Shown here: one piece after another, positions 25,146-51,441 of the stretch
How positions within the stretch are numbered: the stretch's first letter is position 1
Layout: each line of letters starts with the position of its first letter
Sequence record: NC_031039.1
DNA: 64,000 bases
Direction: 5' to 3' (one strand)
Program-made: the position numbers and the translations under genes
The notes under the pieces: model-generated
The model's input: the letters and a program-made list of their open reading frames with translations, nothing else
Told to the model about the DNA's origin: nothing
The model's database searches: none

Positions 25146-28100
25146 TTATTCTGAATATATTTTACCAATTTCTCGTTTAAGATGTACTAATGCTTTGTTT
25201 AAATATAGAGCATTATAAATATCAACGGTCATGCGTGAAACGATACTTAATGGACTCATAATGGCTTCAATGTTCTCATCTGGATCATTCTCACTAAAAG
25301 GCTCTTGATCTTTAGGAATAACATCAGATACAATTGTCTTAAGTGCTGTATAATACGTAATCTTATCTCCAATACCAAGTTCATCATCATACTCAATATA
25401 AATCTCAATGAGTAGTCCATCTACCTCAGTACCTTTAATTTTCTCACCTGATTGCTTTTGAATAGGTTTAAGATTAACAGAAGTCAGATCATTAGTAACA
25501 GACTTAATCTTATCTTCTTTCTTCTTACTATCTTTAATATAGTTCTTCAGAATCTTTTGTACTGAAGGAGAAAACTCACTGATATCCTTATTGTAATACA
25601 TTACAACATCTACAATCTTACCAGTATATTTAGAACTTACCTTGTTCTTAGATAACTCATTAATAGTCTCATTAAAGTCATCTCCTAGTTTATCTAAGAG
25701 TTGGTTGAGTGATTTATCTTCAAAGGAGTTTTCAAAGATAATCAATGGATCACCAGTCTTAACCATATCGCCTTTCTTAACAATAAAGTCAATGTTTGAG
25801 TTAACTCCAAGAGCAAGTTCTTTCTTCATAGTAATTTTAGTAGATAGGTCTTGAGATAAGCTTTCTGTGATAATACTACTATCTTCATACGTGTAATCTG
25901 CGCTTGCTAGTGCTACTTTACAAAGCTTCCCTGTAGTATACGTGATATCATCTTTCTTATCGCCAAGGAAGTAACTTGGATTCTTCGCTAGGATATCATC
26001 TTTTTTGAATTTCTCTCCTACTTTGATAATGAGTTCTTTACGATTAGCAATGTAAACAATTATCTTCCACCAAATTCGCTAGTTTTGGTGCGCCCTCTAA
26101 CGGACTGCTCCATGTTACCATGAAGTTGAGACTATATCTTCAAAGTTCCCTGTTTCCCAGTATACATAAATAAAAGTATACCAGATTTCATCTCAGAAAC
26201 CTGCCACCAATCGCTTGTGGGGTACTCTACTCATCTTTATTAATAAGATTTTCGATAGTCGTTGAACGTTCTCTATTAGTTTAATAGAGCTTCGCTTCTG
26301 ATTATCCTTTTAATAAGGACTTCCCAGAAATTAAAGGAATTTAACGTGAGCCTTTAAACCCACCATTACTATTCTTACTCATATGCTCGGAGAGATCAAT
26401 GACGTCTTTCTTACCATCATTATAACGAACGACAGCTAGTTCATGTTCTTCATCTATGGACTCTAGAACCCCATCTTTTTTTGCTCTAAACACAAAGTCG
26501 TCACTTAGAATATAAGCAACAGTCTTCTCTACACCACTACCAAATAGAGGTTTAGATTGCTTTGTGGTAGGAATGATCGTTAACTTCCATTAGATTCGCT
26601 ACGTCTAATGCGTTCTCTTATGAACTGCTCTATATTTCTATAGAGACGAGACTATATCACTATCCTTATCTATTAAGGATAACCCCCATTTCCATTTAAG
26701 GGATTCTCACCCACTCCAATCGCTTGAGCCGTACTCCTATTGCGGAATTTCACCGCTACTCACAATCCTAAGATTGCTTTCGGATAGTCGTTGAACCTTA
26801 CTCATAAAGAGTCTTGGATGCTGATTGCCCATATATCCTTTAGATTGTTACACTTTGGTACTAAAGGCTTTAGGATTTTCCAGCAGTTAAAGGGTTTTGC
26901 TAGCAATATTACTACTACTAGGCACGAATCATGCTTTTGCTGCGTTGTTTGCATTCCAACGCGCGGTGGGTCGGCATGACGAGCAGTAAAGGAGTTTAAT
27001 AACTCTGCCGGACCATAGATATTTGTCGTATTATTTTTTGTATTTGGATTGGTGTCTAAGAATCCTCGTGTGTTTTTGAATGCTGGATCAAAAGTTAACT
27101 GTCTAACCCATTACCTTCATATAGGTTCGCTACGCCTATACCGTTCTCTTATGAACTGCTCTATGTTACCATAGAGATGAGACTATATCTTTATCTAGTC
27201 AAAAAAAAAAGAAAGGAGATGACTAGATATCTCCCATTTCCATTTAAGGGATTCTCACCCACTCCAATCGCTTGAGCCGTACTCCTATTGTGTGTTAACC
27301 ACTAAAGGATAGTCGTTGAACGTTACTCTCGTTATAATTAAAAATAATTTATAAAACCGTTTTTCTCAGCAATTTCTTTTCTAAAAGTAATTGCTAGTTC
27401 TTTAGCTTTTTCAAAACCATATTTATTGACTGCAAATGTTTTAATAAATTTTTTATGATTAACACGGATTTCAGATTCCCATCTATTTTTCTTTTTAGAA
27501 TATCTTATTCCTTTAATTCCAGAAGTATTATCGTTTCTTAGTGATGTATTTCTATTATTCATCATTTGAGAAACCTCACGCAAATTACTTTTTCTATTAT
27601 TTAAACTATTTCTATCTATATGATCAATTACATTATTATTATCTTTAATATCCATTAGGTATCTATGAAGCTTTCCACCTGAATTACTTGAAATATAAAA
27701 TGAATTATTTCTTTTAGACCAGATAGCTCTCCAAACATGCTTATTTATTTTATCAATATCTTCAATATCAATTTGAGATTTTACGATACCATATGTTTTT
27801 GAAAAAGTAACTAATAATGCATGATCATCTAATACTTCAATAAAATTATATGCTCTTTTTCCTTCTTTTAATGTTTTCATAGCTATACGCTCACTATAAT
27901 CTCCATATAAAACTTCTGAATAATGTGCAAGGGAATTTGATTTCTTTTCTTTATTATAGAAACTTACTCTCCATAATTTTTGTTCTTTTAGATATATTAT
28001 TTTATTTTTTTCCATAATAGTAGCTCTCCTTTTTAACTTACTACTATTATAATATATATTTAACGAGAGTCTTCGATACGGATTGTCCTATTATTAGGAG

Positions 28101-31100
28101 TTTCCCGTAGTTAGAGAGATTTTATCATTATATATCACTATATAAGGGGGCAGTTTAATTCACCCCAACTTTCATTATCTTCCACTAGATTCGCTACATC
28201 TAATGCGTTCTCTTATGAACTGCTTCATGTTACCATGAAGATGAGACTATATCATCATCCTATTAGGATGCCTCCCATTTCCAACTCCAATCGCTTGAGT
28301 TGTACTCTACTCCCTTCCTTCTAACTAGCGTTATCACAACGATCTGTTAGAGTGGTTTCGATAGTCGTTGAACCTTACTCTAATGAGTCTTGGATGCTGA
28401 TTGTCCTTAAAGGATTTTCCAGCAGTTAAAGAGGTTTACTTATAATATTTCTATTATAAGGGACTATTATAAATCTTGTCTGGGAATTCAAGAATTATAA
28501 TAATTCAATCCGAGTCGGGTGTTGACATTGCCATGATTCCACGCATACTAGGGTCATAAGCACGAATATCAGTTGTGTAAGCATCCGTTTTCTTCATATA
28601 GGTTCGCTACACCTATACCGTTCCTTAGAACTGCTCTAAGTTTCCTTAGAGACGAGACTATATCATCACTTAAAAAGTGCCTCCCATTTCCAGCCTCAAT
28701 CGCTTAGACTGTACTCTACTCCCTTCCACTAACTAGCATTATTGTAATGATCTGTTAGAGTGGTTTCGATAGTCGTTGAACCTTTACCTTATTACAAATA
28801 ATTTGTAACTTAGGTACTTGGTTGCTTATGATTACCCAATCCTTTAAATTTTTACCATACCTGAATTGTTATATTCAGCCATCTATTATGTTTCCATATA
28901 GATTTGGTATTAAAGGCTCTAAGGGTGTTCCAGCAGTTAAAGAGGTTTTAATTGGACTAAACACTTTAATCCAAGTTTCTTCCTGAAAGCCCCTTGTAAG
29001 TAGCCGCACCACCCTTTTCAATTTCCAAAGAAGGGTTAAGGACACTATATTCATCGACAGTAGGTGAATTCATTAATGTCTTTAATAGAATATCCTGTGG
29101 AACAGACATCTTAATAGGATTACCAGCTTTCAGTGTATCCTTATACGTTTTAAATGAATCTGCCAAGATTTTATATAAGTAGGCATTTACTTGCTCAGTA
29201 CCACGAATTCGATATGAACTCATATCATTCAGTGGACTATAGCTCATATCTTCCAATAAGGTATTCGCATACAACAATATGTCATAGATATTCTCAGGTA
29301 ATTCTAACTGTTTCAGTACATCTAATGTGATAGGATCAACCATTAGAGATAGAGTATTATGAAGACCTTTACCCATATTTCTGCTACCGAACATCTCATA
29401 GAAAGTTTCAATATAAGGATCTTTAGAGTTCATTTCTTCAAATGTATACTCTTCAGTAGCCATTGTACTTAGACCACTTAATAATAGGGAATTTCTCAAT
29501 AAAGAATTATTATAATATAGGTATCCATCTTTAAAACGGATCTTGTCATAGTCATCATCAATTGTAATTCTCTTATTCTTAGTATCAAAGCTATATTCAA
29601 TATTATATCTTTCTAATAAATCTTCTAATCCTAATTCATATCCAAGAAGAACCACAAGGGGAATCATTCTATTATTGATACGAACTCGGTTATATGCTAG
29701 AGACTTAGAATTACTTAAAGAAGATAATTTTTTATAAGCTTCCTCACTAAGTGAAGTAACAATAACTTTAATAATGAGTTCTGAAAGACTCATATCAGTA
29801 TTTTCTTGTTTCTTATTATTAATCAGATAAACTCTTTTACTTGAACGCTTAAGAGCAATAACGTTTTCATTATCTTTTGTATGACCGATTGGTAAGAATT
29901 GTTTATCGTCAATATTAATCTTAGCAAGCTTAGCCATATTATCAAGATCACTTTTCAATAAATCTTCTACTTCTTTTTGACTGAACATAAGTTTATATTC
30001 ATCATTCTCTAAGCTTAGAAGGAAGGAAGAGATCTCATTATATTCAAGAGTTGTTTCATATCCCTCATTAATTGTAAGAGCATTACCTAAGCGATAATTA
30101 AACTTCTTACCTGATACCTTAAATTCATTTAAATCCATACCAAAGAGTTTCTTAAGTTTCTCAGTTTTATGAGATAGTTTAGAACCAAAACGCATGACAA
30201 AGAATTTATTATAGTTAGTAGTAATCTGAACTTCATCAGGTTTTGTTTTTACAATTGGTAGAGATAGAATTTGTTTCAAAATCAATTTTTTACCACCATT
30301 AATATTCATAAACCTACCATCTCTGATAATAGGATAATCGAATTTAACAGTATGCTTTACATTACGGTCATCTTGGAAAGTAACAGTATAAGTTAGTTTC
30401 TTTGATAAATCAGTAGATGTGTCTTCTGTTTTAATATCACTTACAAATAATTTAACATCACTATCTCCATTAAATGATGAAAGAACTGCAACTAAGTCTT
30501 TTTTCATCTGTTTCTCAAAGTAGCTCATATCAAAATCTTTAAGATTTGAATATCTAGTTTCTTCTTGAATGACATTTGTATTGGTAATTGGCTTTCGGTC
30601 AATACTTGTTGATTTAAAGTCATCAATAATATCCTGAATATTAATATCATCAAGAGTAACTTGTTTTTGTTTTTCTTTTAAACGTTCAAGAGTCTTTCTC
30701 TGTTTAATTTCATCTCCACCAGTAGACTGAAGCTCTTTAAGAGTTGAAACATCAGCTTTTAATTCCTTACTGTTATTTAAGATATCAATGATTTCATCTT
30801 CACTTTTATCAAGAATATCTTCATCACTTGAATCAATAGCTTTTTCAATATCATCACCAATCTTATCAGTAACTTCAATTGCACTACTAGATAGTTTTGT
30901 ATTTCCATCGATTTGGAAATTACTTAATAATTTTTCTTTAACTTTTTCAGATTTTTCTTTTACTAATGCATCTCTCTTGTTTTCTGTTTCTTGAGTTGCC
31001 TCTTCCTTACCTAGAGGTTTTTCATCATTATTAGTCTTCTGATGATTTGCTGTTTTAATAAGAATATTTAATGCATTAAGGAATCTATTTGCAAGAAGAT

Positions 31101-31764
31101 TAGAAAGTTCATCATTAATATTAAATTTAATAAATGTATTATTAACAGTAGTGTAAAAAATAAAATCTACATTTTTAAGTTCTTTCTTCTGTTCCTCTGT
31201 TAATAGCTTTCTCTTAATTGCCATATAGATATAAGCAAAAGGTGTTCTTGCATTATTTAAGTCAAAGAATGATGGATCAAGAACATTGTCAGGAACAGGA
31301 ATTGCTACTGCTTTATTCTCATATGATGCACCCTCTTTAATTTTAGATATAAGAAAATCAAAATACATTTCAACTCGTTTTCTTCCACGAACTTTAATCT
31401 CTACTTCATTCTCAAGATGCTCATTTGTAATATCATAGATCAAGTTAAGATCATTATAATTAGTTAAAGCACGTTTAGTATAAATAATACTAGAGCATTT
31501 TGCTTTTACCTCATCATAATATTTCTTTTGATCTACAATAATTCTTTTATTCTTCTGAATGGTATTGAATGCTCTTGGAATATATACTCCTCTAAAAAAA
31601 GAAGGACTGAATATATTAGAATTAATAAAATCAAATATCTCACTTTGATTATTTCCTGAAAAGAAAATCAAATTTGAATTACGGTCATTTTTCCTTTTTT
31701 TAATGGATGAAAGTTTTATATTAGAGTACACTCTCAATTCCTTGAGATTATCAAGATAAAACAA
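25146..31764 (-). CDS. rpoB: Phage RNA polymerase beta subunit, N-terminal half (probably virion RNAP); six exons, about 1397 aa after splicing
   Basis: Exons 31764-28969, 28585-28508, 28172-28162, 27108-26931, 26577-26358, 26056-25146 join in frame giving GLSGRNLD|DAYT..STPDSD|KVGV|VRQLTFDP..HADPPRVGMQTTQQKH|IIP..NSNGG|FYI..YTYEDS, collinear with beta motifs GPGG, TPEG, DDANRALMG.NMQRQ, RSNQ, GYNYED; late promoter at 31790. Confidence 0.9.
26057..26357 (-). mobile_element. Group I intron 5 of RNAP beta (301 nt)
   Basis: P1 GUGGGU|/GCUCAC; P10 UAAA/UUUA; P7 elements; terminal G. Confidence 0.9.
26578..26930 (-). mobile_element. Group I intron 4 of RNAP beta (353 nt)
   Basis: P1 GCAU|/GUGC; P10 GAU/AUC; P7 elements; terminal G. 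Confidence 0.9.
27338..28015 (-). CDS. Intron-encoded HNH-AP2 homing endonuclease
   Basis: LHRYLM..IDHIDRNSLNNRKSNLR (HNH); NTSGIKG..W...F.V.KYG...A (AP2); possible second AP2-like segment at the N-terminus; own SD AAGGAG. Confidence 0.9.
   Translation of the reverse strand: MEKNKIIYLKEQKLWRVSFYNKEKKSNSLAHYSEVLYGDYSERIAMKTLKEGKRAYNFIEVLDDHALLVTFSKTYGIVKSQIDIEDIDKINKHVWRAIWSKRNNSFYISSNSGGKLHRYLMDIKDNNNVIDHIDRNSLNNRKSNLREVSQMMNNRNTSLRNDNTSGIKGIRYSKKKNRWESEIRVNHKKFIKTFAVNKYGFEKAKELAITFRKEIAEKNGFINYF
28014..28061 (-). promoter_or_regulatory. Intron-internal early-type promoter plus start-codon-sequestering hairpin
   Basis: AAATATATATTAT at 28061-28049; perfect 10-bp stem 28041-28050/28014-28023 with the SD in the loop. 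Confidence 0.7.
28162..28172 (-). other. 11-nt micro-exon AAAGTTGGGGT (K-V-G-V)
   Basis: Lies between terminal G of intron 2 and P1 of intron 3; needed to keep the frame. Confidence 0.85.
28173..28507 (-). mobile_element. Group I intron 2 of RNAP beta (335 nt)
   Basis: Long P1 GGAU|U/AGUCC; conserved P4 AACUGCUGGAA and P7 elements; terminal G. Confidence 0.85.
28586..28968 (-). mobile_element. Group I intron 1 of RNAP beta (383 nt)
   Basis: P1 GGAU|UAA/UUAGUCC with U.G pair; P7 GACUAUC/GAUAUAGUC; terminal G; P10 AAGUGUU/GAUGCUU. Confidence 0.9.
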
Positions 31765-31818
31765 TTATACCCACTTCCTTTCTTAACAATATCTATTTGT
31801 TTACATAAGAAATTAAAA

Positions 31819-31852
31819 ATAAAAAGATAAGGTTTTATCCTTATCTTTTTAT
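31819..31852 (-). terminator. Terminator after the tail-fibre operon
   Basis: ATAAAAAGATAAGG...CCTTATCTTTTTAT. Confidence 0.75.
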
Positions 31853-31855
31853 TAT

Positions 31856-32724
31856 TTATTCTGTTACAGTTTCATCATTACTAGTTCTATTTAAATTATC
31901 TTTATTATAAATAGTAATAATATCATTTTCTATAATATCAGATTCATCTGAAAACGAGAATTCTCTTTTTATATATTTAATTAAATCATCTTTATCTTTA
32001 AAATTTTCCTGAGTATAAGGATCAAATGGTTGATAATAAAACTGTTGTCCACTAGGAATAAAGTAACCATCTGTAACCCATCTTCCATCTTTTTCTTGTC
32101 TGAGTATAAATTGCTTATCATGACTTTCCATAGTTGACACCCCTATACAGTTTTCGTTTCATATTCACTAGAAACCTTCAAGTTAATCAATACTTCGCTC
32201 TTATTTTTAAGAACTACTGTAATAACAAAATCACCAAGAACTAATGGAGTTCCTTTGATCATTTCACTATCAGCATCATAATACAAACTTGAAGGCAATC
32301 CTTTAACCTGTTTAATAAGAGATACTTCACTTGTATTTAATTTTACGGTTAGTGAATGTCCTGAAACTGCATTAATTGAAAAGTCTTGTAGACCATTTAC
32401 AGAAGGTTTTAGGTAAATAGTATAGTCCATTTTAACATCAATTGTTGATTTAAGTGAAGTTACATTAGTCAAAAATACTTTATCTTTTTTATTTTCTTTA
32501 ACAATCAGATTGGAAAAACCACTTAATACAGGTTTATTAGAATTAAAATTACATAAAGTTGCTTGCGTTTTTCCTATAGAGTCAGTAATATTTCTAACAT
32601 AAAAGGTATTTGTTATTATATGGTTATCAGGATTATTTAAATCCGTAATTTTTCCATCTTTAACATTAAGTTCATTTTTTATTTTAAAACCATTTAAATA
32701 AGTTAATCTAGTTTTAACAATCAC
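31856..32724 (-). CDS. Two tail-associated proteins (31856-32140; 32143-32724 with putative Ig-like domain)
   Basis: GLPSSLYYD...IKGTP..GDF.ITV resembles the He_PIG putative Ig motif; late operon. Confidence 0.5.
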
Positions 32725-32729
32725 TTTAC

Positions 32730-35095
32730 TTAACTCCCTTCATAAGAAGTATAAGTAGAAATGGCTCCTGAACCAGTTATTATAATTGGTACTCTCGTAG
32801 GTGATGTTGAGCTTGTAGAAACATTATATGATTTATCTTGACTATCTCTAAATATTGCATTTCCTTCAAGCATTAATTTAATCTCTGTTTCTTTTAATTG
32901 TCCTGTCATATCTCTTGCCTCGACTAATATTGCACTTTCAATATTTTGATCCACATAGGTAATATCTGTATCTTCGAAACTAACTGAGACATCAACTGAC
33001 AAGAAAGGACTAATCATTTCTAAATTAGCACCTTCTTTATTTCTTATAAACCAAACTCTTTCTAAATCATCAATGCCTATAGATCTAATTGGATCAGTAA
33101 TATTCTCAATCAATGAAAATCTCTTTGTAGTGGAATCAGTAGTATATACCCAAAAACCATTATTTTTAACAATAACAATAAATTGATCACCTAGAGGGAA
33201 AATTGCCTTAACGCCATCCAAATGAATATCTTTGAATGGTAGAGAATCTTTTAAAGTTAAATTTAATTCAGTATCATCAAATTCTAAAAGATGAATTGGG
33301 AACTCTTTTGTTTTATAGGTATCTGCAAGATATGATGCATTTAATGAACCAGATCTTGGGTTTGAAACTGATGCACGTTTATAATAGTTAATCCAATCGG
33401 TATAAAAGATTTCATTTAAATGCGAGAATACATTTCCAATATATAGGTATTTAGTATTATTAACAGTGATTGAACCAATTTGAATTGAGTAAAGATTTAA
33501 ACCATAATCTTGATAATTGTAAAGTGTTTTTAAATCTAATCCGTTAATACTAAGATTTGTCACCGTACCTACTTTTCCATTAGGAATATCTATAGGTAAC
33601 TTACATAAAGAACTGCTTGAACCAGTTATATATTCCATTTGTAAATAATATAAACAGCTTTCTTTAGAATCAAAATATGGTATTTGTCTAGCAAATGTGG
33701 AATATCCTGTTGTTGATCCAGCATGAATATTTTTACTGAATAAAACCGTTTCAACTAATGTTGGTGAAATCTTCTTTACTAGCAATCTTGTTTTTGGACC
33801 AGACATTGTATATGTTGTACCATCTTCTTTTGTTATAGTTTCATTATTAAAAATATAACCTTGTGTTAAAATAATTAAACTGCCATTAGAAGTTTTACCT
33901 AGAATATTTAAAATTTCTTCTCCATTTAAAGTGTAACTTTTAGTTAAGTTTAAGTTTTTATCAAAAAGTAGAATACTATCATTTAAATTAACGGTATTAT
34001 ATGCTGTTGATGTTGAAGCTAAACTGTATTGATTAAGAGCAGCGGCAGAATAAGTGCAATTGGAATAGTAGTTTCCATTCACTATTGTAATAGAAGAACT
34101 TCTATTTAGTTCAAAATACTCTTTTCCGTATAAATCAATTTTAGCATTTTCACCATTAGCTGGAGGAGAACTAGTACCTCCAATATTATTTATCCCAAAT
34201 CCTCCATAATTTATCATATTTCTAACAACAATGAATGAGCTTTCATCTAGTTTAACTAATGATGTTTTTCCTAATCCATTCGAAAATCTATAAGTATTTA
34301 AAATTTTTCCATACTTATATTGATAGATAGCAGTTGCTGTATTTCCAGAACTTTCTGATACTCTAATTTCTGTACCATCATTAAATGAAATTGAATTTTG
34401 AAAAATGGTTTCATCTTTGCGATATGGTATACGTCCTCCTACAAAAGCTGTTCTACCATCATAATTTATACTATGAGTTCTTGTTCTAGTATTAATATTA
34501 TTTGCATTATATGGGGAAGAATAACTAAAGTATGGTGATCTTGCAACTTTCTCTTCTTGTAAAGAATTCTTATTATACGTCTTACCATTAATTAAAATTG
34601 TATTACTCTCTTCCTGAAACAAAGGAAAAGAAGTAAAATTATCTCTTGTAATTGAGAAATTTCCTTGACCAATTGAATAAATTACACTCATAAATATCCT
34701 CCTTAGATACTTTTAATAGAATAAGTTAAAGTACAGTTTCCTCCTATGGAAATGACAAGATCACTTCTTTGTGAAGAAAATGCCATTACTTTTCCTGCAT
34801 CTATATTTCCTTCATGTAATACTGAACCTAATGATGTAATCTTAAAAGGAATAGCTATAGAATTTTTGTTTTTAATATTAATACTACAACTTATTACAGA
34901 TGTTCCCCCAATCGTATTTAATATATTAGACATATTAAATATTTCAGTTAAATTTGTTATATTAGTAAAATCTTTAGTCTCACTTTTTGAGTTTACTGAT
35001 AGGGAATTCTTTTGTAAGCTAAGAATATCTTCCTTAATAGTGTTACCAATGATACCCTTTATTTGATTCTGATTAATCAATAAGTTCACCTCCAC
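32730..35095 (-). CDS. Beta-rich tail/receptor-binding proteins (32730-34691; 34703-35095)
   Basis: S/T/G/N/Y-rich beta composition; late promoter at 35098. Confidence 0.45.
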
Positions 35096-35178: not shown

Positions 35179-36351
35179 TTATTTGACTCTTAATTTTTGC
35201 CCTACATAGATTTTATTAACATCAGCTAATTTATTCCATGATTTAATTTGATCAATTGAAGAGCCAAATTTCTTAGCAATAGCTGATACATTATCTCCTG
35301 CTTTTACAGTATAATACTGTACAGATGATTTAGTGGAACTACCACTAGTAGGAATTTTAAGTGTTTGTCCTACAGAAATTTTATTTGGATCTTTAATTCC
35401 ATTAGCTGATGCGATAGCATTAACTGTAGAGCCAAATTTCTTAGCAATAGCAGTTAAATTATCTCCTGCTTTTACTTTATAAGTTGTAGAAGAACTAGAT
35501 GTCTTAGTAGAACTTACTGATTTAGAATTACCGCTAAGTTTAAGAACTTGACCTACATAGATTTTATTTGGATCTTTAATTCCATTAATACTTTGAAGAG
35601 TAGAAACAGAAACTCCAAATTTACTAGCAATTTTGGAAAGAACATCACCTTTTTGCACTGTGTACGTACCAGAAGGTTTACTTTCTTTTTTAGGTGCTGA
35701 CACTGTAACTGGTTTTACAGCAGATTCTGTTTTAACAACTTTTTTAACTCCACCAGTAAACCAAGTAAGTGATTTATCACCATTTAGTAAATTCATGTCA
35801 AGAGTACCGTTATACCATGATACTTTCCCATATTCGGTATATTGCCAGATGCAACAAGGGAAATCTGGTTTTTTATTAGCTGTACCATCATTACGACCAT
35901 AACGAGGAATCCATAAGAAGTCAGCATCAACTTTATTCAGTCCATAAGACATATAAAGATTGTGAGATACATAATAACCAGTCTTATAACCAGCTTTTCT
36001 ACAAGTATCAATAAATGCTTGTGAAGCTTCTCTAAGATTAGCAGTTCCGCAAGATGCAACTGTATCATCCTCAACATCAAGAGCTAGAAATTTAGCATCT
36101 TTATCAATACGGCTTAAGAAATCATTTGCTTCAATAATAGCATCTTTAACTGATACATAGTGTCCATAAGCATAATGACCAAAAGGAATGCCATATTTCT
36201 TACAATTAGCCACATGATTTTTGTATTCTCGGTCAATAGTCTTTGAACCATATTGAACACGAATAATCATAAGATCTACTTCTTTAGCCGCTCTTGCCCA
36301 ATCAATTGCACTTGAAGGTTGGTGGTGAGAAATATCAATAATGTAACCCAT
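35179..36351 (-). CDS. Endolysin: GH25 muramidase with three LysM domains
   Basis: IDISHHQ, ALDVED, IWQYT; three YTV(Q/K).GD.LS.IA.KFG..V..I...N.I.DPNKI.VGQ.L repeats. Confidence 0.92.
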
Positions 36352-40310: not shown

Positions 40311-41078
40311 ATGGCATTGAAAAAGAAAGTAGTTCGCCCTAAAACATCTGGGGAAGTAGCGGCAGAAAAAGCAAAAGAGGAAGAAGTACAACAGCCAGTA
40401 GTAGAAACAACTGAGGAACCTAAAGTAGAAGCTAAAGAAGAAAAGAAAGCTACACCTAAGAAAAATGTTGCTAAAGCTACTAAAGAAGAAAAAGCTGAAG
40501 CTACATATACCGAAGAAAAACAAGAAGAGCCAGTAGAAGAAGTAGTTGAGGAACCTAAAGAAGAGAAAAAAGAAACTAAAACATCTCCTAAGAAAAAACC
40601 AGCAAGTAAAAAAGAAGCTAATAAAACTATTGCTCTTAAATCAGTTAATGACTCAGAAGAAGAAAGTGATAACTCTGGTGGTCGTCGTGCTACTAGAAAA
40701 TCTGTAATGAAACAAGTTCAAAAACATTTGGAAGATCAAGGAATTTCTATCACCCTAGACGCAGTTACAACTGTTGTAGGTGCTTTTGAAGAAGTTCTAG
40801 ATGAAGTAACAAATCATAAAGATTTCAAATTCATGAACTCAATGATTAAACGTCAAGAGCGTTCTGGACAAGTTTATAAATCTCCAAAGGCTGGATATGA
40901 TTCCTATAAAGCTGATCGTGTAGTAAAAACATTTACAAAAGATACAACTAATGTAGACAAGTTCCGTGGGCAATATCTGAAAGATGAAGGTAAATTTATT
41001 GCTGATGGTAAGTTCAACTATGACACTGGTGAATTTGATCCAGTAGAACTTGAAATTGAAGTTGGTAAGAAAAAATAA
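40311..41078 (+). CDS. HU/IHF-like DNA-binding protein with long K/E/A/P low-complexity N-terminus
   Basis: C-terminal two helices then beta-arm IKRQERSGQVYKSPK; early promoter at 40214. Confidence 0.55.
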   Translation: MALKKKVVRPKTSGEVAAEKAKEEEVQQPVVETTEEPKVEAKEEKKATPKKNVAKATKEEKAEATYTEEKQEEPVEEVVEEPKEEKKETKTSPKKKPASKKEANKTIALKSVNDSEEESDNSGGRRATRKSVMKQVQKHLEDQGISITLDAVTTVVGAFEEVLDEVTNHKDFKFMNSMIKRQERSGQVYKSPKAGYDSYKADRVVKTFTKDTTNVDKFRGQYLKDEGKFIADGKFNYDTGEFDPVELEIEVGKKK

Positions 41079-42713: not shown

Positions 42714-43070
42714 ATGGCTGAATATTTGAAAATACCTAGTAAATTTAATGAAATTATAGAATTATTAAATAAACATGGATATAAAGATATTACTTGGAGT
42801 ACTACAAACGGATTTTACATTAGAGACTGTGCTGGAATGTCTATTGATGTTAGATTTAATTTTAATATTAATAGATTTCTCGTAACTATAAGAGGAAGAA
42901 ATTATGAAAATATTAATATTGATGAATTACAAAAATATATTGACGAATTAAATGAGACTAAAAATCTAATTGATAAGTTAAATAAACTCCTTGAAGTAGA
43001 CGATATCCCTGTACCAGATCTAGATAGTGGTACTCCCACTGAAAAAACTGAAGATGAACATGATTTTTAA
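42714..43070 (+). CDS. Hypothetical protein
   Basis: 118-aa SD-led ORF with acidic tail. Confidence 0.55.
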   Translation: MAEYLKIPSKFNEIIELLNKHGYKDITWSTTNGFYIRDCAGMSIDVRFNFNINRFLVTIRGRNYENINIDELQKYIDELNETKNLIDKLNKLLEVDDIPVPDLDSGTPTEKTEDEHDF

Positions 43071-43310
43071 TAATAATTAATAAGGGGATTAACGAATGAA
43101 GATGGAGAATGGAAGTTAATAATCATTAATTTTAATGAAAATAATTAACAAAAAAATAATAATGGGTAATAAGGGTTATAATAATATAACTCTTATTATT
43201 CTATTATTAATATTAAAATATTAATTTTTTATTATATAAACAATATTATATAATATAATTTATAAATAATTATTTTTTTTTTATTTTATAAGTAAAGAAG
43301 GTGAAATAGT

Positions 43311-46300
43311 ATGCCAATGAGAGTACTACCAAAATTCGTTAAAAATGTAGGTAGATCACTTGGAAGATCAACAGCTTCAGCATTTGGTGATATGATGCCT
43401 AGTATGAAGAATTCAGGTATTGATAGTAAAAATTATATTGCTGAAGTATATAATTCTTCCAGAGAGAAAGTAACTCCTAATGAAGTTAAACAGACCTACA
43501 TTTATAAATCTGGTCAGCAATTAATTAATAATGCAATTAGAGATCTTAAATCAGGTAATTTCTATAATAAAGAAAGACAACAACAAGCATCTAATGATTC
43601 TTTCAAAGAGATGTTTGGTATTGATTTAGATAATCTTACTAATTTTGAAGATCAAAATAAAGAAACAACAAAAGAGAAAGATGGAAAAACTATTCACAAT
43701 ACCAGTAATAATACTCAACAAAATGTTTTTGTGAATAATAGTGATCCATCTACTTCTAAAAGCATTCAGCAATTAACAACTATTTCATCTTCAGCTATGA
43801 AGATGAGTCATTATAATTCTAGTGCTTTGAGTAAACAAATTTCTACATTAATTGAATTCCAGCATAATAACACTAACAGATTCTATACAGAGATGTCAAG
43901 TAAAATGGCTGATATTACAAGAGATGTTAGTCAGATGACCGGATTCCTTGGTGTGATGGCTGAGGTTTCAGTAGGTGGAACTAGAAGAACACAAGGCGAG
44001 TCCATGCTTGCAACATTATTAGGGTTAGAAGGATTTAGTGTTAGTGGAATGAAGGATATGTATAGGAAAAAATATTCTAATTCTACTGGTGGAATGAAAG
44101 ATACATTTAATCTTGTTATTAAACCTTATATTGATGAAGTTGTTGCAAATCCAATTGGAGCTTTAACTAAAAATGCAATTAAGTTAGCTTTACCAAGAGC
44201 TTTAAAATCAGCTGTTGGTGATATGGATCAAATGTTTAAATTTCTTCCTACTATGATCCAAGGAAAAGCTAAAGATTGGGAAGGTAGCGATAATGTCTTT
44301 AAGAGAAATGCCGCAAAAATATTTGGCATTGATCTAAAAGAAGATAAGGGATTTAACTTTTCTAATTATGAAAAAGGAAAGGTAGCATTTGATGGTGTAA
44401 CTAGACGCTCTATTGTTAATGTAATTCCATCATTGTTATCTAAAATTTTGGCTAGTGTTAGCAATAATTCAACTCATAAAGAAGAACTTATCTATGATTA
44501 TGATAAAGGAAAATTTACTACTAGAAAACGTGTAATAAAAGAAATGAATAGTGATATTAAAAACTTCACTATTGATAACTATGATCTTACTAATTATAAA
44601 GAACAGATTGCAAGAGAGAATCAATCTAAATTTTCAAGCAGTGAAGAATTATCTGCTTTTATGGAAAGAGTTGATAAAGCTCTTTTATCCATGGTTAAAA
44701 ATAGCAAAATGATTCATGGTAATAGCAAGGCATCTGATATTTCGGAGGATGAAGATGTTGCTAATGCTATCTTAAATAACTTCAAGGGTCAAACAAATGC
44801 TAATAAGTCTAAATATCAATATGATCTACTAAGTGCTTCAAAAGCTTATTCCGATATTTATAGAAGAATTGAGCAAAATGAATCATTCAATAATGCCTTT
44901 GATATGACAAAAGAAGAAAGAATATTTGAGCCTGAAACTAATAAAGAAATGGCTAGAAGAGTAAAATCAAATATTGATAGATTCTTTGGTGTTGGTCAAG
45001 GACCAGTAGAAAATAATATGAGTAAAAAGAATCCTCTTTATTGGTTAACTGAAGGTATTAAGAGAGTTAATGGAAAAACTTCTGAATTTTTTTATGGACA
45101 GGATAATAATGAATATGCATATACTAGACCTCAACAACCTTCTTCTAATCAGCAAAATACAGTAAATAGAGGATCTAAGATAAAAGATTTTGCTAGTAGA
45201 GTAGTAAATACAGGAAGTAATGCTATTTCTAGGTTAAATACAAGAAATGGTTTAGTGCCTGAGAGAAGAACTTCACCTTCAATTCCTGTTATCTCAAATA
45301 CTGAGGATACTAGTAGTAACAATACAACAAGAGAATTAAGTAATTTAAATCAAAATATTGAAGAAGTAAATAATGAAATTAGTGGAGATAGAGGTATCAC
45401 CAGAAGCATCTTCCTGTTAAATAGAAATATTGAACGTAATAATAGAATTATGGAAGGTAGAAATGATGAGAAAACATCCTCTTCCACTAATTCAACTGCC
45501 ATTAGAACTACGAATGTACAAAACCCAGATCTTTCCATTCTCCCTAAGATTAATGATAATATTCTTCATATTATAGCATTACTAGAAGCTAAATTTAGTG
45601 GAGATGGCTTACCAGTAGGTAGGATTGGAAAATTCAAAAATATTATTGGTAGTTATAAGGATAAAACTCTTAATTTCTTTGAAAAGTTATTTGGAAGAGG
45701 AAGATCTAATTCAGGAGGTTTCTTCTCTAGAACAGCAGAAAAAGTTAAAGGCTTTATTGGAATGGTATTTGGTAATTCAGGTTCCAGAACTTCACTTTTA
45801 TCTAAATTATTTGGTGGTGCAATGGATTCTATTAAAGGTGCTAATGGAAGACAATCTATTACATCAAGACTTCTAGGAAGAGATGGCATTATCACCAAGT
45901 TTGTTTCTGGTACATTAACAACTGTTTTGGATGTTGCGTCTAAAACAATTCCAAAAGCAACTAAATTTGCAGGAGAGGTAACAAAAGGATTTTTAAATTT
46001 TGGTAAAAGTGCTTTTTCACTAATACTTGGAGCAGGTAAAAAAGGATTAGATAAAGCTAAAGAACTTCGATCAAATAGATCTGCAAGTAGAGCAGGAAGA
46101 AGCGGAAATAGAAATATTAAAGGAATGAGAGGCTTACTTGGTCTTTTAACAAGTACTACTGGGAGTGTTATAGGAGGAGCAGGTAGCCTTATTGGTGGAA
46201 GCTTAAGCCTTGGTATGAGAGGCATTTCAAAAGTAGGAGATATCGCTTCAGGTATTGGTAATAAACTATCTGGTCGTAAAGGGCATAAAAAAAGTAAATC

Positions 46301-49088
46301 TTCTTCTAATAGAAGATCTTTTTCAATGCCAGATATTATAGATAGAGTATTTAATCGTAAAAGTGATTCACTGCATGTCTTTGTAGATGGCGGTTCTCTA
46401 GATAAAATCCGAGAAGTAGTTAAGGTTCAGACACATATTAGTGATGGAAACTCTGCAGTAGAACAAATTGCAGAGTTTAAAAAAAGACGTCAAAATAATG
46501 AAAATAGCCTTCTTCAAAACTTAAAAGGTGGTAGAAAGAAAAGAAATAGAAATAACCTTACAGGTGAACAGTCTTCTGGTGGAGGTTTTTTAAGCGGAAC
46601 ACTGAGTAATATTGCAGGTGATATTATTGGTGAGGTAATTGGAAATAAAATTGCTGGACGTGGAGGAAGAGATACTGGTACTAGAGCTGGAAGAAGAGCT
46701 GGACGGAGAGGAATCTTTGGTAGAATTGGCGGTCTCTTTAATCGCAATAGAGGTGGTGCATCTGAAGCTATTGAAGGAGCAACTGATTTAGCACAAAACT
46801 CTACTAGAATGGGAAGAAATCAATCAACTGGACGAGGAATTAGAGGTATGTTCAGTCGAATTGGTGGAGGATTATCTCGTCTAGGTGGACGAGGAATGGC
46901 AGGAATTGGTGCTTTAGGTGCTGGTGCAGGATTGGCATCTGGGGGTGCTGGAGTTGCTCAAGCCGCAACTACAGGCGCATCAGCTACACAGGCGGCTACT
47001 ACGGCGGCAGGTGCTAGTGGAGTAGCAGGATCGGCTTCTGGAGGCGCTAAAGGACTTCTTAGAGGAGCCGGAACAGCACTTAGAGGGGCAGGTAGATTAG
47101 CAAAATTCATTCCGGGAGTAGGATTAGTTGCTACAGCAGGAATGGGTGTTATGGATGCTATTAATGGCGTTCAGAACGCTAACCAAATATTTGGAACTGA
47201 AAAAGCTACTTTAGGACAAAAAGTATCTGCAGGAGCAGGTAGTGTTATAAGTGGACTTACATTTGGTTTAGCTGATAAAGAAAAAGTTTCAAAAGGGATT
47301 TATGGATTTGGTAACAAGATTAAAGATTTTGGTTCAAAAGCATTAAGTACAGTTAAGAAAAATCCTTTATTACTCGCCGGAGGTATTGGTGGAGGATTAG
47401 GATTAGGTGCTTTAGGACTTTCTAAGATGTTTGGAAAAAAAGAGGATGAAGATCAAAAAAGAGATGCTGAAAAGGGAGAAAACAGTAAGCAACCTATTAA
47501 TAAAATCTCTGCTTGGGTCGAAAAACTAGGTAAATTCTTCTCAATTGGTGCTGGTGGTACATTCTTTAGTGGTATCTGGGGAATGATTACTGGTAAAACA
47601 GGTGGTATCTTTGATAAGATTGGTAACTGGTTTAAAGGCTTATTTGGTGGAGGAAAAGATGATAGTACTTCAGGTGGCGATTCTTATACTGGTAAAATTG
47701 GTTCTGGTATTGGAGCACTAGCCGCTAAATATGAGTCTAGTGGTAATGCTGGAACGGTAGCAAATAGTTCTGGTGATATTGGTGGGCAATCATTTGGTAA
47801 ATATCAACTTGCAAGAAATACTGGGTCTTATAAATCTTTTATTAATAAGCTTAGTGATTATGGTCATGAAGATTGGGAAAAACAATTAAAATCAGCTTAT
47901 AATAGTACCTCTCAAAGTGCGGCAGTGTGGAAGAAGATATATAAGGAAAATCCAAAAGAATTTGAAAAAGTTCAAGATCAATATTTTGCAGATCAATATT
48001 TTAGACCAGCGGCAGGTAAAATCAAATCTGCAATTGGTTTAGATGTTGGTAAACGTTCTACGGCTGTTCAAGCGGTATTATTATCTACTGCTGTTCAACA
48101 TGGAACTGCTGGTGCTGTTAATGTTTGGAAGAATGCACTTGGTAGTAAAGCAAATGATATGTCTGATTCTGAAATTATTAATGCAGTTTATAAAGAGCGT
48201 GCGGCTAATAATGGTATGAAATATTTCCCTAGTTCTTCTGCCGCTATTCGTAAAGGTGTTGTGAACCGATTCTCAAGAGAGAAAAAAGATGCATTAGCAA
48301 TGTTAGCTAAAGATGGTGGAGAAAAAGCAAATACTTCATCTGATAGTGATAAAGATACAAAAGATTCTTCAACAACAGGTTCAACAGCATCTAAGGTTAT
48401 GAATGATCGCAGTCAATTTTACGATAATCCATTTGACTCAGCTTCTTCAGGTGGAGGCTATACAAATAGTACAGCAGGTTATGACTCAGCACCTTCTTCA
48501 TCATATAAGAGTATTGGTGGATTTAGTCTTGGTTCATCTGCTGGAAAAGCATTAACTTCTGGTTCTGCATATGTGGCAAATTTACTTTCAACATCTGATA
48601 AAGCAATGGGAGACTTAAGATGGTCAATTGGAAATAATACTATTTCTAAAGCAAATAGTATTAAGAATAGCTATCTAAATTCCAATTCTTCAAGTAATCC
48701 ATTTTCTGCATTAGGAATTGGCACAGGAACAACATCAAATATTAAATCGACTGCATCAAGTTCATTAGTAAGTCCATTAAGCTCTATTCCAAAACTTTCA
48801 AGTTCTTCTTCAGAAAGTAACACTGGAAGTACTATAACTGGAAATGATTTTACTGAAATGCTTAAGAACTCTGATGAAATTGCTCAAATGCAAAGTATTC
48901 TTAAACAAATTAATGAGAACAGCAAACAAGGAAATAGTATTCTGGCTAAGATGCTTGAAGCCATTATTGATATTAGAGATAATAAAAGTTTTGGTGGAAC
49001 AACAGTAGTCAATAATACTTCTTCAGGTTCAAATTACAGTTCTTCAAGTATTTCTCCAGAGACAGATAGTATGTTAAAGGGTTATTAA
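43311..49088 (+). CDS. Tape-measure protein with VgrG3-like lysozyme domain
   Basis: 1925 aa; helical and G/R/A-rich segments; KYESSG..GD.GG.SFGKYQ..WSTAVQHG-type motif (LSTAVQHG) at about 47716-48305. Confidence 0.75.
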   Translation: MPMRVLPKFVKNVGRSLGRSTASAFGDMMPSMKNSGIDSKNYIAEVYNSSREKVTPNEVKQTYIYKSGQQLINNAIRDLKSGNFYNKERQQQASNDSFKEMFGIDLDNLTNFEDQNKETTKEKDGKTIHNTSNNTQQNVFVNNSDPSTSKSIQQLTTISSSAMKMSHYNSSALSKQISTLIEFQHNNTNRFYTEMSSKMADITRDVSQMTGFLGVMAEVSVGGTRRTQGESMLATLLGLEGFSVSGMKDMYRKKYSNSTGGMKDTFNLVIKPYIDEVVANPIGALTKNAIKLALPRALKSAVGDMDQMFKFLPTMIQGKAKDWEGSDNVFKRNAAKIFGIDLKEDKGFNFSNYEKGKVAFDGVTRRSIVNVIPSLLSKILASVSNNSTHKEELIYDYDKGKFTTRKRVIKEMNSDIKNFTIDNYDLTNYKEQIARENQSKFSSSEELSAFMERVDKALLSMVKNSKMIHGNSKASDISEDEDVANAILNNFKGQTNANKSKYQYDLLSASKAYSDIYRRIEQNESFNNAFDMTKEERIFEPETNKEMARRVKSNIDRFFGVGQGPVENNMSKKNPLYWLTEGIKRVNGKTSEFFYGQDNNEYAYTRPQQPSSNQQNTVNRGSKIKDFASRVVNTGSNAISRLNTRNGLVPERRTSPSIPVISNTEDTSSNNTTRELSNLNQNIEEVNNEISGDRGITRSIFLLNRNIERNNRIMEGRNDEKTSSSTNSTAIRTTNVQNPDLSILPKINDNILHIIALLEAKFSGDGLPVGRIGKFKNIIGSYKDKTLNFFEKLFGRGRSNSGGFFSRTAEKVKGFIGMVFGNSGSRTSLLSKLFGGAMDSIKGANGRQSITSRLLGRDGIITKFVSGTLTTVLDVASKTIPKATKFAGEVTKGFLNFGKSAFSLILGAGKKGLDKAKELRSNRSASRAGRSGNRNIKGMRGLLGLLTSTTGSVIGGAGSLIGGSLSLGMRGISKVGDIASGIGNKLSGRKGHKKSKSSSNRRSFSMPDIIDRVFNRKSDSLHVFVDGGSLDKIREVVKVQTHISDGNSAVEQIAEFKKRRQNNENSLLQNLKGGRKKRNRNNLTGEQSSGGGFLSGTLSNIAGDIIGEVIGNKIAGRGGRDTGTRAGRRAGRRGIFGRIGGLFNRNRGGASEAIEGATDLAQNSTRMGRNQSTGRGIRGMFSRIGGGLSRLGGRGMAGIGALGAGAGLASGGAGVAQAATTGASATQAATTAAGASGVAGSASGGAKGLLRGAGTALRGAGRLAKFIPGVGLVATAGMGVMDAINGVQNANQIFGTEKATLGQKVSAGAGSVISGLTFGLADKEKVSKGIYGFGNKIKDFGSKALSTVKKNPLLLAGGIGGGLGLGALGLSKMFGKKEDEDQKRDAEKGENSKQPINKISAWVEKLGKFFSIGAGGTFFSGIWGMITGKTGGIFDKIGNWFKGLFGGGKDDSTSGGDSYTGKIGSGIGALAAKYESSGNAGTVANSSGDIGGQSFGKYQLARNTGSYKSFINKLSDYGHEDWEKQLKSAYNSTSQSAAVWKKIYKENPKEFEKVQDQYFADQYFRPAAGKIKSAIGLDVGKRSTAVQAVLLSTAVQHGTAGAVNVWKNALGSKANDMSDSEIINAVYKERAANNGMKYFPSSSAAIRKGVVNRFSREKKDALAMLAKDGGEKANTSSDSDKDTKDSSTTGSTASKVMNDRSQFYDNPFDSASSGGGYTNSTAGYDSAPSSSYKSIGGFSLGSSAGKALTSGSAYVANLLSTSDKAMGDLRWSIGNNTISKANSIKNSYLNSNSSSNPFSALGIGTGTTSNIKSTASSSLVSPLSSIPKLSSSSSESNTGSTITGNDFTEMLKNSDEIAQMQSILKQINENSKQGNSILAKMLEAIIDIRDNKSFGGTTVVNNTSSGSNYSSSSISPETDSMLKGY

Positions 49089-49105
49089 TAGAGAGGTGAT
49101 TTATT

Positions 49106-51441
49106 ATGGCAGATGAACAGCAAAACGTTGATGAACAACAGTCACAGATAATTGGAGATGAGTTTTTCCAAGAAGGTAACTCTAATTCAGATTCAAAAGG
49201 TGGATTTGGAACAAGTGTAGAATATACTGATGGTTTTGAAGCGTTAATTGGATCTTCTAAGGGTGGTTCTGGTTCTTATGCTACACCTACATGGAATCCA
49301 TATAAATCAGATAGTGTATTAGGATTACCTTTATACTATAATGATTTAGCGGATCCTTCGGGAAGAGTATACAATCAAACCATTATTCAAGATATTCCTA
49401 ATATATACATGGTTCCCGGAATTCCATCTATTAATAGAAATATGATTGACGTAGCAGGAAAACGTATTATTCCTGCTACTCTTTCTCGTGCATTAATGGA
49501 TTTTCAAAATAATCCAAATAGTATTTTTAATTTTGGAGTTAGAGGAGTAAAAAGTGGTAATGACCTTCGTTTCATAGGGTTTAAAGCAGATTATTCTGAA
49601 TACTTTAAATATGTACAAACTATGTTAAGTACTATACATTCATATATGGCAATGGATGGCATATTTGATTTATATAGATTCTCAGATGACTTTAATAATA
49701 GTTTTAAAAATTATGGATTATGTTTTTATGCAGATAAATCTACAACTATTTCTGAGTCAGCTGATAATACTTATGCGGCTTCTAGAACAGCAGAAATGGT
49801 AAGTGAGAAAGCGGCTACTTTAAGGGAAGCAGATTTATTATATCCTACAGGAAGTACAACATCTCGTATTGTTGACTCAATTAAAGCGGCTAATCCAATT
49901 GGTGTACTAGAATCATTAGGTTCATTTGATGGAATTATCACTCGTACATCAAATGCATTATTTCGTGTTGTAAATGGATCACAATTAATGTTCCCTGACT
50001 TTTGGCAAGATTCTAGATTTGATAAATCTTATAATATTAGTTTCAAATTTTATAGTCCTTATGGTGATAGAGAAAGTATATTTAGATATGTGTATGTACC
50101 TTTTATAGCACTATTAGCATTAGCATTGCCTTAAATGACGGGGCAATTAAAACTCTTTTAACTGCTGGAACATCCTTAGAGCTTATTAGACTACAACGTG
50201 ACTGGTGACAGTGAGCGTGAATGTTTAAAAACTAATAAGATTGGACAATCAGCAACTAGTTAAAACTTCCACATGGAAGTTACTAGCTCAACGACTATCG
50301 AAACCACATCATTTGATGGAAGGAAGTAGAGTACCCCACAAGCGTGGTTACATTTAGGCATAAATGTAAGTATAGTAAACTAATACTATATGGGAAACAA
50401 AGAGCATGATGAAGGCAAAAAGCTGGAGTGAAGATATAGTCTCAACTTCTATGGAAACATAGAGCAGTTCATAAGAGAACGCACTGAAGTAGCGACTCAG
50501 TGGAAGGTTATGCGTCAAGACGGTTTATTAGGATATCAGCAACCATTCTTTGTAAGAATGTCTCGTCCGGGTTAACTAAATAGCTCGGCTTATGAGTAAT
50601 CATAAGAAACAATCATTCTCTAATTGCTGGAAAGTCTTAACATGTTGTGATGAAGATAATCAGCAGCGAAGATTATTAGTTTTAGATTGTGTAATAAAAA
50701 ATTATATCAATAGTAAAATAAACAAAATAATATAAAAATAATTATTGTAAGATTAATAATATTCCACTTTTAAGAATACCATATAAATATAGGGATACTG
50801 TTGATATAATTCTAGAAGACTTCTTTACTAATAATAACGTTCAACGACTATCCGAAAGTAATCGTTAGATTATGAGTAGCCTAAAAATAGGCAATAGGAG
50901 TACGGCTCAAGTGTTTGGAGTGGGTGAAAATCCCTTAAATGGAAACGGGAATCCCCTCTTTAGAGAGGGTGAAGATATAGTCTCATCTCTATGGAAACAT
51001 AGAGCAGTTCATAAGAGAACGCATTAGATGTAGCGAATCTAATGGAAGGTAATGTATTTTGACATAGATATGGGAGTAGTAACAAGCTTAACTATCACTA
51101 AAGGCGGAGCTGATAGTCTTTGGACAGTTGACGGTCATCCGCAAATGATTGAAGTTAATATGAACGTAGTAGATTTATATCCACAAATGATCCAAATTAA
51201 AGATATTGGTTTACTTGCATATAATCTGGGAATTGCATCATTCTTAGAAAACATGGCAGGAATAAGACCAGACCAATTAAGTTTTCTTAAATTTAAATCA
51301 TTAATTAATAGAAAACTATCAAATTCATTATTGTTTACTACTTTCCTTGATGGAGGTTCAGGAATTAAAGATAGAGTTGGTAATAAATTTGCTGACTTCT
51401 TCTATGAACTACAAGGTAAGTTTAATAATATATTAAGATAA
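49106..51441 (+). CDS. Tail tube initiator/baseplate protein; three exons, about 490 aa after splicing
   Basis: Exons 49106-50131, 50513-50572, 51055-51441 join as LALALP|RQDGLLGYQQPFFVRMSRPG|YFDIDMGVVTSLTITKGG; follows the tape-measure gene. Confidence 0.75.
50132..50512 (+). mobile_element. Group I intron A (381 nt)
   Basis: P1 UUGCCU|/GGGCAA; perfect P10 UGACG/CGUCA; P7 GACUAUC/GAUAUAGUC; terminal G. Confidence 0.9.
50573..51054 (+). mobile_element. Group I intron B (482 nt) with AT-rich P6 extension
   Basis: P1 CCGGGU|/GCUCGG; P10 AAAUA/UAUUU; P7 elements; terminal G. Confidence 0.9.

Follow-up and report, generated by a model that had tools for sequence, protein, structure and literature searches.

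How have the seven introns that interrupt two virion genes of Bacillus phage AR9 come to resemble each other in a different way in each of their parts? The window analysed here, a stretch of 64,000 nucleotides (nt), is 100% identical to positions 124001-188000 of AR9 (KU878088.1; AR9 coordinate = window coordinate + 124000), a uracil-DNA jumbo phage of the genus Takahashivirus that infects B. subtilis and has a guanine plus cytosine (G+C) content of 28%. All seven introns were already annotated in GenBank, five of them (I1-I5) in g189, which encodes a virion RNA polymerase subunit, and two (A and B) in g205, which encodes a virion structural protein. Korn et al. mention mature AR9 mRNA sequences that had been determined experimentally, and later papers treat the AR9 introns as known. 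Their existence is thus already known and the question is their mutual relationship. A sequence-only reading of the region 26057-51054, bounded by the final bases of I5 and of B, had proposed that the introns spread within the genome to new sites, by reverse splicing or recombination and with re-tuned guide sequences, and that they shuffled modules between copies. Our analysis did support the shuffling of modules across gene boundaries; recent spread with re-tuned guides and reverse splicing were not shown. The mosaic is real and larger than first noted, and its best explanation is probably gene conversion between intron copies that sit on partly old site lineages.

Within the window the shared stretches connect the introns in conflicting ways, and the coordinates and counts that had been given for them were all exact on recheck. 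I3 and I4 share 58 identical nt, a run that ends at exactly these borders on both sides, and the reverse complement of the corresponding stretch of B matches it in 54 of 58 positions (Table 1). A different core, GAAACCACTCTAACAGATC, was found only in I1 (28749) and I2 (28341), on the minus strand, and a third, represented by AGAGTACCCCACAAGCG and TGGGAAACA, is confined to I5 and A. The 3′ ends, compared from P9.1 to the end of the intron, group I1 with I3 (88% identity) on the one hand and I2, I4 and B on the other (I2-I4 92%, I2-B 96%, I4-B 94%), with 77-85% between the groups. Furthermore, A and B have 36 identical nt in common (50448-50483 = 50988-51023). The longest common substring expected by chance between shuffled introns is about 8.6 nt, with a maximum of 11.

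The mosaic extends beyond the window. Split genes annotated in AR9 are g044, g078, g114, g121 (terminase, in five pieces), g145, g189, g205 and g270, and by Rfam and BLAST searches relatives of the window introns were located in g078 (two), g114, g121 (four, here T1-T4), g145 and g270, which brings the family to at least 15 related introns over seven genes. With I2 as query, BLAST matched 12 places in AR9, 12 in PBS1, 18 in Internexus, 11 in BpSp and 4 in Goe21. The exact tracts shared between introns measure 81, 78, 76, 60, 58 and 50 nt, and the longest four (81, 78, 76 and 60 nt) are shared with introns outside the window. We split 15 introns at invariant anchors into modules, handling the P5-P6 region as one module, and found that for the window introns the nearest relative switches from module to module. 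In I2 the P7.1 hairpin is nearest to T4 and the g145 intron (48/48, 100%), P7.2 to T2 (97%) and the J8/7-P9 stretch to T4 (100%). I3 has its nearest relative in I4 for P7.2 (100%) and in T1 for the 3′ domain (100% and 96%). For I4 the nearest relatives are T3 in the P5 extension (81%), the first g078 intron (g078a) in P7.1 (95%) and B at the 3′ end, and its P6, as read from the sequence, resembles the I2 type. Intron A is nearest to g114 in the P5 extension (79%, with g078b nearly the same) and to T3 in P8 (81%), and B has P7.1 and P7.2 of the I4 type (77% and 94%, P7.2 being 94% identical to both I3 and I4) with a 3′ end nearest to I2 and T4 (96%).

Such discordance is also evident from a four-gamete pattern within g189, where I1 combines P7.2 type a with P9.2 type x, I2 a with y, I3 b with x and I4 b with y, each P7.2 and P9.2 type being defined by several nucleotides. 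Recombination tests, which had been suggested as a check on the sequence-only reading, were significant. A Sawyer-type tract test on the 15 introns (127 polymorphic sites, 20000 permutations of site order) gave a corrected global P < 0.05 in 13 of 105 pairs, and the pairwise homoplasy index (PHI) test on the same introns gave P = 0.0003, with 71% of informative site pairs incompatible. The seven window introns alone gave PHI values of P = 0.0002-0.0006 and a global P ≤ 0.004 for the pairs I2-B, A-B and I3-I4 (0.004 for I3-I4).

The strongest evidence for the mosaic comes from hairpin replacements that distinguish the sister phages PBS1 and Internexus from AR9. Introns at the same site in PBS1, Internexus and Goe21 are 97-100% identical to those of AR9, and the differences are clustered and hairpin-sized, each cluster being equal to another intron copy. 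The I4 of PBS1 has a P6 hairpin of the T3/T4 type, identical over about 20 nt, and the remainder of the intron is identical to that of AR9. In Internexus, the inner P7.1 hairpin of I1 is of the I2/T type and the P9 hairpin of I2 is of the B/T3/g145 type. The 3′ domain of Internexus I3 differs from AR9 at five positions, all of them in the T2 state, and the whole 3′ stretch equals T2 in Internexus and T1 in AR9. For each hairpin replacement found, a matching donor is present in the same genome.

Several points weigh against reading this patchwork as exchange. Two of the shared regions recur with little change in unrelated phages: introns of Staphylococcus, SPbeta-type Bacillus (SPBc2, phi3Ts) and Vibrio phages match P7.2 type b at 86-91% identity, and those of Staphylococcus and Enterococcus phages match the J8/7-P9.1 stretch at 94-98%. 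Constraint rather than recent exchange therefore accounts for some of the long identity, and the 58-nt tract, which lies in the conserved P7.2 module, is by itself weak evidence of recent exchange. The PHI and run tests assume independent sites, and compensatory changes in hairpins can inflate both; with 127-142 polymorphic sites the alignments are short, for several modules no true alignment between types is possible, and the ends of the introns outside the window (T2-T4, g078, g114, g145) are approximate, having been set by eye. Moreover, the data neither date the events nor place them within one genome as opposed to between co-infecting phages. The first of these points could be extended to an account with no exchange at all, in which ribozyme modules conserved by purifying selection acquired convergent compensatory changes. 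The modules shared with phages of other genera would fit it, as would the many differences that are paired changes in stems. Nevertheless we consider such an account highly improbable, since the module that holds the identical 76-78 nt P7-P7.1 tract common to I2, T4 and the g145 intron lacks such conservation in phages beyond the clade (74% to BpSp), PBS1 I4 has a P6 hairpin of a foreign type in an otherwise unchanged intron, all five differences of the Internexus I3 3′ domain take the state of a single other intron, and the incompatible pairs make up the majority of informative site pairs.

Whether exchange took place between genomes is a separate matter. The chimeras might have formed between co-infecting Takahashiviruses or with other IA2-bearing phages of Bacillus, with AR9 inheriting ready mosaics. 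This would be in line with the occupancy and open reading frame (ORF) content of the introns, which vary among AR9, PBS1, Internexus and Goe21 at about 98% genome identity, with exon codons next to polymorphic sites that are heavily recoded, as in co-conversion from a diverged donor, and with intron cores that are 85% identical in other B. subtilis phages. However, the matching donor for every hairpin replacement lies in the same genome, and the three introns of BpSp that share an identical P7.1-P7.2, unlike that of the AR9 clade, show the pattern of homogenisation within a lineage. We therefore regard a between-genome origin as possible but tentative; it overlaps with gene conversion among intron copies and does not exclude it.

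Comparison with the distant phage BpSp indicates which parts of an intron belong to its site. The polymerase gene of BpSp (54% protein identity) has introns at residues 913, 960 and 1011 and two more at 1021 and 1094, the sites of I4 and I5, where the guide sequence is the same as in AR9. Only in P1-P2 (74%) and in P3′-P8 (83%) is AR9 I4 the nearest relative of the fourth BpSp intron; in P7.1-P7.2 this intron equals the second and third BpSp introns (100%) and has no more than 42-45% identity with I4. The sequences thus suggest that the P1-P2 guide module follows the insertion site and that the inner modules follow the genome. If each intron simply descended at its own site, same-site introns should be closest and the domain trees congruent; instead, the inner modules of the BpSp I4-site intron group with BpSp's own introns. 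A comparable chimera occurs in Goe21, where an intron 5 nt past the I2 site (site 2.5) has the 5′ end of the second BpSp intron (95%) and the P7.2, P9 and 3′ end of AR9/PBS1-clade types (94-100%). The I4 and I5 sites and guides are common to AR9 and distant BpSp; these sites look old, with intron interiors that have been overwritten.

The same data bear on recent transposition of whole introns, by reverse splicing or by ectopic endonuclease cutting, with the guides re-tuned afterwards and the similarities due to descent of entire introns. A family spread over seven genes implies ectopic insertion at some time, and BpSp has no intron at either the A or the B site, nor has Goe21 at the B site. 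Related guides occur at similar exon ends (GGAU for I1 and I2; GGGU for I5, B and T1, with guides that start with GCUC), which fits the rule of a 4-6 nt P1 for reverse splicing (PMC3984707). The G-rich exon ends may, however, only serve a stable P1 at the low G+C content of AR9. Whole-intron transposition moreover predicts one tree for all modules, and the module trees disagree; the I4 and I5 sites with their guides are shared with BpSp; no reverse transcriptase has been reported in AR9; and according to the same review (PMC3984707) mobility by reverse splicing has no direct experimental support. The endonuclease ORFs favour overwriting over recent copying of whole introns: between sites their proteins share only about 28-48% identity, compared with 94-100% for ribozyme modules. 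Recent whole-intron transposition thus appears unlikely, and reverse splicing is not needed and finds no support beyond the suggestive exon ends.

Presence and absence of introns are polymorphic among the sister phages in spite of their near-identical genomes. Intron-less alleles were found for the I1 and B sites in Goe21 and for the I5 site in PBS1 and Goe21, and the I2 and I3 sites are empty in Goe21. ORF content differs likewise. Among the AR9 introns of the window, an endonuclease ORF is present in I3 only (g190) and none was found in I1, I2, I4, I5, A or B. The product of g190 matched the Pfam AP2 domain (7e-14) and, under the curated cut-off, HNH_3 (7.5e-05; 22.7 vs 24.8 bits). In Internexus, I3 is 412 nt long with no ORF, I4 is 1531 nt long with a 368-aa (amino acid) ORF, and B is 1111 nt long with a 301-aa ORF; intron A measures 1318 nt in Internexus and 1321 nt in Goe21, both with an ORF. 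The ORFs in Internexus I4, A and B and in Goe21 A span 301-368 aa, and by weak, mostly sub-threshold Pfam matches they are CapR / zinc-finger / Vsr-like, a type recently described for the AR9/PBS1 clade (PMC12350094). Where the ORF-bearing versions of A and B have ribozyme sequence in common with AR9, identity is about 98.7-100% (in A, 100% between AR9 and Internexus at shared positions, with Goe21 differing at 5/381), and therefore A and B of AR9 are ORF-less derivatives, each by one large deletion. Since ORF-bearing versions of I4, A and B exist in relatives, a DNA-based route is on offer. Intron A of PBS1 (441 nt vs 381 in AR9) has one additional module-sized block of 60 nt in its 3′ half and is otherwise 100% identical.

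Under gene conversion as the preferred reading, the patchwork would arise mainly from non-allelic homologous recombination among the paralogous introns, with tracts of about 20-80 nt, usually entire hairpins, being copied from intron to intron in one genome or between co-infecting relatives. Selection would retain only those exchanges that keep base pairing, and P1-P2 as well as the intron's own P3/P3′ pair would stay with the insertion site. Occupancy and endonuclease ORFs would turn over fast among sister phages through endonuclease-driven homing followed by loss of the ORF. Recombination as the mechanism, its direction and its location are what we infer from the observed patterns. A bolder version, in which the at least 15 introns evolve in concert, hairpins move freely across the seven genes and new sites are chosen by pairing between guide and exon (the GGAU and GGGU ends), seems quite doubtful to us. 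If true, it would provide natural evidence of target choice of the reverse-splicing type in protein-coding genes, so far argued only for ribosomal DNA (rDNA) introns.

A candidate partner for the introns that lack an ORF lies directly downstream of g189, where g188 is annotated as a free-standing, Hef-like homing endonuclease. Its Pfam matches to CapR and treble-clef zinc-finger domains are about at the cut-offs, and it has 27-40% identity with the ORFs that Internexus and Goe21 carry within I4, A, B and the intron at site 2.5. Possibly g188 acts in trans on ORF-less introns. In collaborative homing a free-standing endonuclease adjoins a gene with an ORF-less intron (review PMC3984707). The arrangement in AR9 is alike in that the ORF-less I1, I2, I4 and I5 adjoin g188, which is paralogous to ORFs in the same introns of sister phages; the likeness is a lead only. 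The g188 gene also contains three tandem repeats of about 207 nt each at 24470-25060.

The seven elements themselves are, as far as can be read from the DNA, ordinary self-splicing group I introns of subgroup IA2, and their predicted splicing would restore both genes. Two hairpins, P7.1 and P7.2, sit between P7 and the 3′ strand of P3, which is the IA2 layout; the helices are named after the Michel-Westhof scheme. In 14 of 14 testable introns the segment after GGAAAN is complementary at 6/6 positions to the hexamer that precedes J3/4; the introns together have 12 distinct hexamers, and the pairing with the own partner is significant when partners are shuffled (P = 5e-5). P3′ was placed after both inserted hairpins because this segment covaries with P3. 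A position directly after P7.1, as in the Rfam alignment of intron A, was rejected, as the covariation holds in all introns. The Rfam model RF00028 reached its gathering score of 50 in six of the seven introns; B alone falls below, with every core element aligned despite the sub-cut-off score (E = 2.7e-10). In all seven the U at the exon end is paired with a guide G in P1 and the intron ends in G. Counted from the splice-site U.G, contiguous P1 pairs average 5.4 with the own guide vs 3.7 with the guides of other introns, a comparison that discriminates poorly because G/U-rich exon ends pair promiscuously.

Table 1. Positions of genes, exons, introns and shared tracts in the window (T1-T4, terminase introns of g121; remarks on identities refer to intron copies in AR9)
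Feature	Position	Strand	Remarks
AR9_g189, virion RNA polymerase beta subunit (N-terminal part)	25146..31764	-	annotated join, 6 pieces
g189 exons	31764-28969, 28585-28508, 28172-28162, 27108-26931, 26577-26358, 26056-25146	-
g189 exon 3	28162..28172	-	11 nt between I2 and I3, in motif TPDSD/KVGV/VRQL; splice model and gap-free LPJP1 alignment
I1	28586..28968	-	RNA sense 28968-28586; 383 nt, no ORF; RF00028 69.2 bits; P1 UUGGAU/GUCCAA; 5′ exon end U and intron end G (sequence reading); both ends fixed by I1-less Goe21
I2	28173..28507	-	RNA sense 28507-28173; 335 nt, no ORF; RF00028 102.4 bits; P1 GGAU/GUCC
I3	27109..28161	-	RNA sense 28161-27109; 1053 nt, only window intron with ORF; RF00028 50.8 bits on 3′ part (5′ part 30.7 bits in PBS1); P1 GGGGU/GCCCC
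I4	26578..26930	-	RNA sense 26930-26578; 353 nt, no ORF; RF00028 76.6 bits; P1 GCAU/GUGC
I5	26057..26357	-	RNA sense 26357-26057; 301 nt, no ORF; RF00028 76.3 bits; P1 GUGGGU/GCUCAC
AR9_g190, HNH-AP2 homing endonuclease ORF within I3	27338..28015	-	annotated HNH homing endonuclease with AP2 domain
AR9_g188, free-standing, Hef-like homing endonuclease (annotation)	23327..25075	-	directly downstream of g189
AR9_g205, virion structural protein	49106..51441	+	annotated join, 3 pieces; PHROG 20401
g205 exons	49106-50131, 50513-50572, 51055-51441	+
A	50132..50512	+	RNA sense 50132-50512; 381 nt, no ORF; RF00028 56.1 bits; P1 AUUGCCU/GGGCAAU
B	50573..51054	+	RNA sense 50573-51054; 482 nt, no intact ORF, AT-rich P6-loop stretch; RF00028 47.7 bits; ends fixed by B-less Goe21 allele
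58-nt tract, I3 copy (P7.2 into P3′ start)	27233..27290	-	identical to 26685-26742
58-nt tract, I4 copy	26685..26742	-
58-nt tract module, B copy	50892..50949	+	54/58
I3 3′ domain (J8/7 to P9.2)	27111..27191	-	81 nt identical to T1
I2 P7-P7.1-P7.2 tract	28299..28376	-	78 nt = T4; 76 nt = g145 (beta′) intron
I1 tract	28749..28784	-	36 nt identical to I2 (28341-28376), T4 and g145 intron
B 3′ domain	50969..51028	+	60 nt = T3 and g145 intron; includes the 36 nt common with A
I4 3′ domain	26584..26633	-	50 nt identical to T3 and g145 intron

The splice junctions agree with uninterrupted homologues. The joined exons of g189 encode 1397 aa without an internal stop and align without gaps over all five junctions to the homologue of Listeria phage LPJP1; those of g205 encode 490 aa without an internal stop and align to gp264 of BpSp (72% identity) with no gaps at both junctions. 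The sequence-only reading had called g205 a tail gene; it is a virion structural gene adjoining the tape-measure gene, and a role in the tail is not established. The peptide around the 11-nt exon 3 of g189 is identical in Goe21, which has a single intron at a third site, and around this exon almost all codons are synonymously different between AR9 and Goe21. Goe21 and BpSp each have one intron 5 nt past the I2 site, and by protein alignment an exon break of Machias falls at the same residue, so that three insertion sites lie within 11 nt around exon 3. In PBS1 and Goe21, mismatches in the exons cluster beside polymorphic intron sites, at the exon ends next to the I5, I2/I3 and B sites; PBS1, for example, has six of them within 50 nt beside its empty I5 site. 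Goe21, which has no intron at the B site, shows an A there in place of the splice-site T of the intron-bearing phages.

The process itself has precedents. Recombination between the td, nrdB and sunY introns of phage T4 was reportedly found by Hall, Liu and Shub in 1989 and by Bryk and Belfort in 1990 to lead to exon shuffling and shuffling of intron domains. As in AR9, several IA2 introns with common core stretches occur in one phage genome and non-allelic recombination yields working chimeras; unlike in AR9, these were laboratory selections with three introns, whereas the AR9 case is natural, comprises at least 15 copies in seven genes and shows hairpin-sized tracts between sequenced sisters. 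To our knowledge, domain shuffling between phage introns has been shown only in these T4 laboratory selections. The mosaic thus adds a new natural case of an established process, in introns that were themselves known before, and an earlier description is possible. For IA2 introns of Firmicutes phages, Landthaler and Shub are said to have described in 1999 three introns in orf142 of Twort. Twort and phage K resemble AR9 in the intron subgroup, in several related introns within one structural gene and in very short exons, and the AR9 P7.2 module is 91% identical to that of the lysK intron of Staphylococcus phage K type; AR9 differs in that its copies are more numerous and distributed over seven genes, one of which has five introns and an 11-nt exon.

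For the omega intron in the 21S rRNA of yeast mitochondria, gene conversion that followed horizontal transfer produced mosaics of both intron and ORF (Wu & Hao 2014, PMC4059233). Chimeric introns, a rapid gain and loss of ORFs independent of the intron and a significant PHI test are common to both systems; in omega, however, conversion was allelic, i.e. at the same site in different species, and the donors in AR9 are mostly other sites in other genes. A further parallel is the gp210 intron in the virion RNA polymerase beta gene of PhiPA3, where a competitive role was shown for gp210 (Birkholz et al. 2024, PMC11620839). Here too a group I intron with an HNH endonuclease interrupts the same conserved region of the homologous gene in a jumbo phage. 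In AR9 numbering the break between gp211 and gp209 falls near residue 1011, at the site of the third BpSp intron; this site is empty in AR9 and the competitive role belongs to PhiPA3 gp210. A placement of the PhiPA3 intron at the I2 site was rejected, as it aligns near residue 1011. Across jumbo phages, the 180-residue stretch between residues 913 and 1094 of g189 (window ~26350-29030) has at least eight intron sites, namely 913, 932, 958, 960, 961.7, ~1011 (third BpSp intron and the PhiPA3 gp211/gp209 break), 1021 and 1094.

Most arguments on the arrival of group I introns at new sites, and on the diversification of their ribozymes, still draw on rDNA and organelle data. In the PBS1/AR9 clade, four near-identical genomes and one distant genome differ in occupancy, ORFs and single hairpins, so that the process can be followed directly in natural sequences; more genomes would permit estimates of exchange rates and tract sizes. 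For such introns, a tree based on a single region will mislead, and subgroup calls may disagree between the halves of one intron. Small ORFs annotated within them are probably not genes. This probably applies to the hypothetical AR9_g206 and g207 (50592-50735 and 50872-51027, plus strand), which lie wholly within intron B, with g207 over the P7.2-P9 ribozyme core.

Two further observations were made. The virion beta′ gene g145 also contains, beside its family group I intron, a group II intron (RF02004 80.7 bits, RF00029 55.2 bits); this neighbourhood of group II and group I intron has been reported (PMC12350094). In other genes of the window, direct repeats of 52-119 nt that are 75-87% identical occur at 35196-35587 and 40377-40574, and these are unrelated to the introns.

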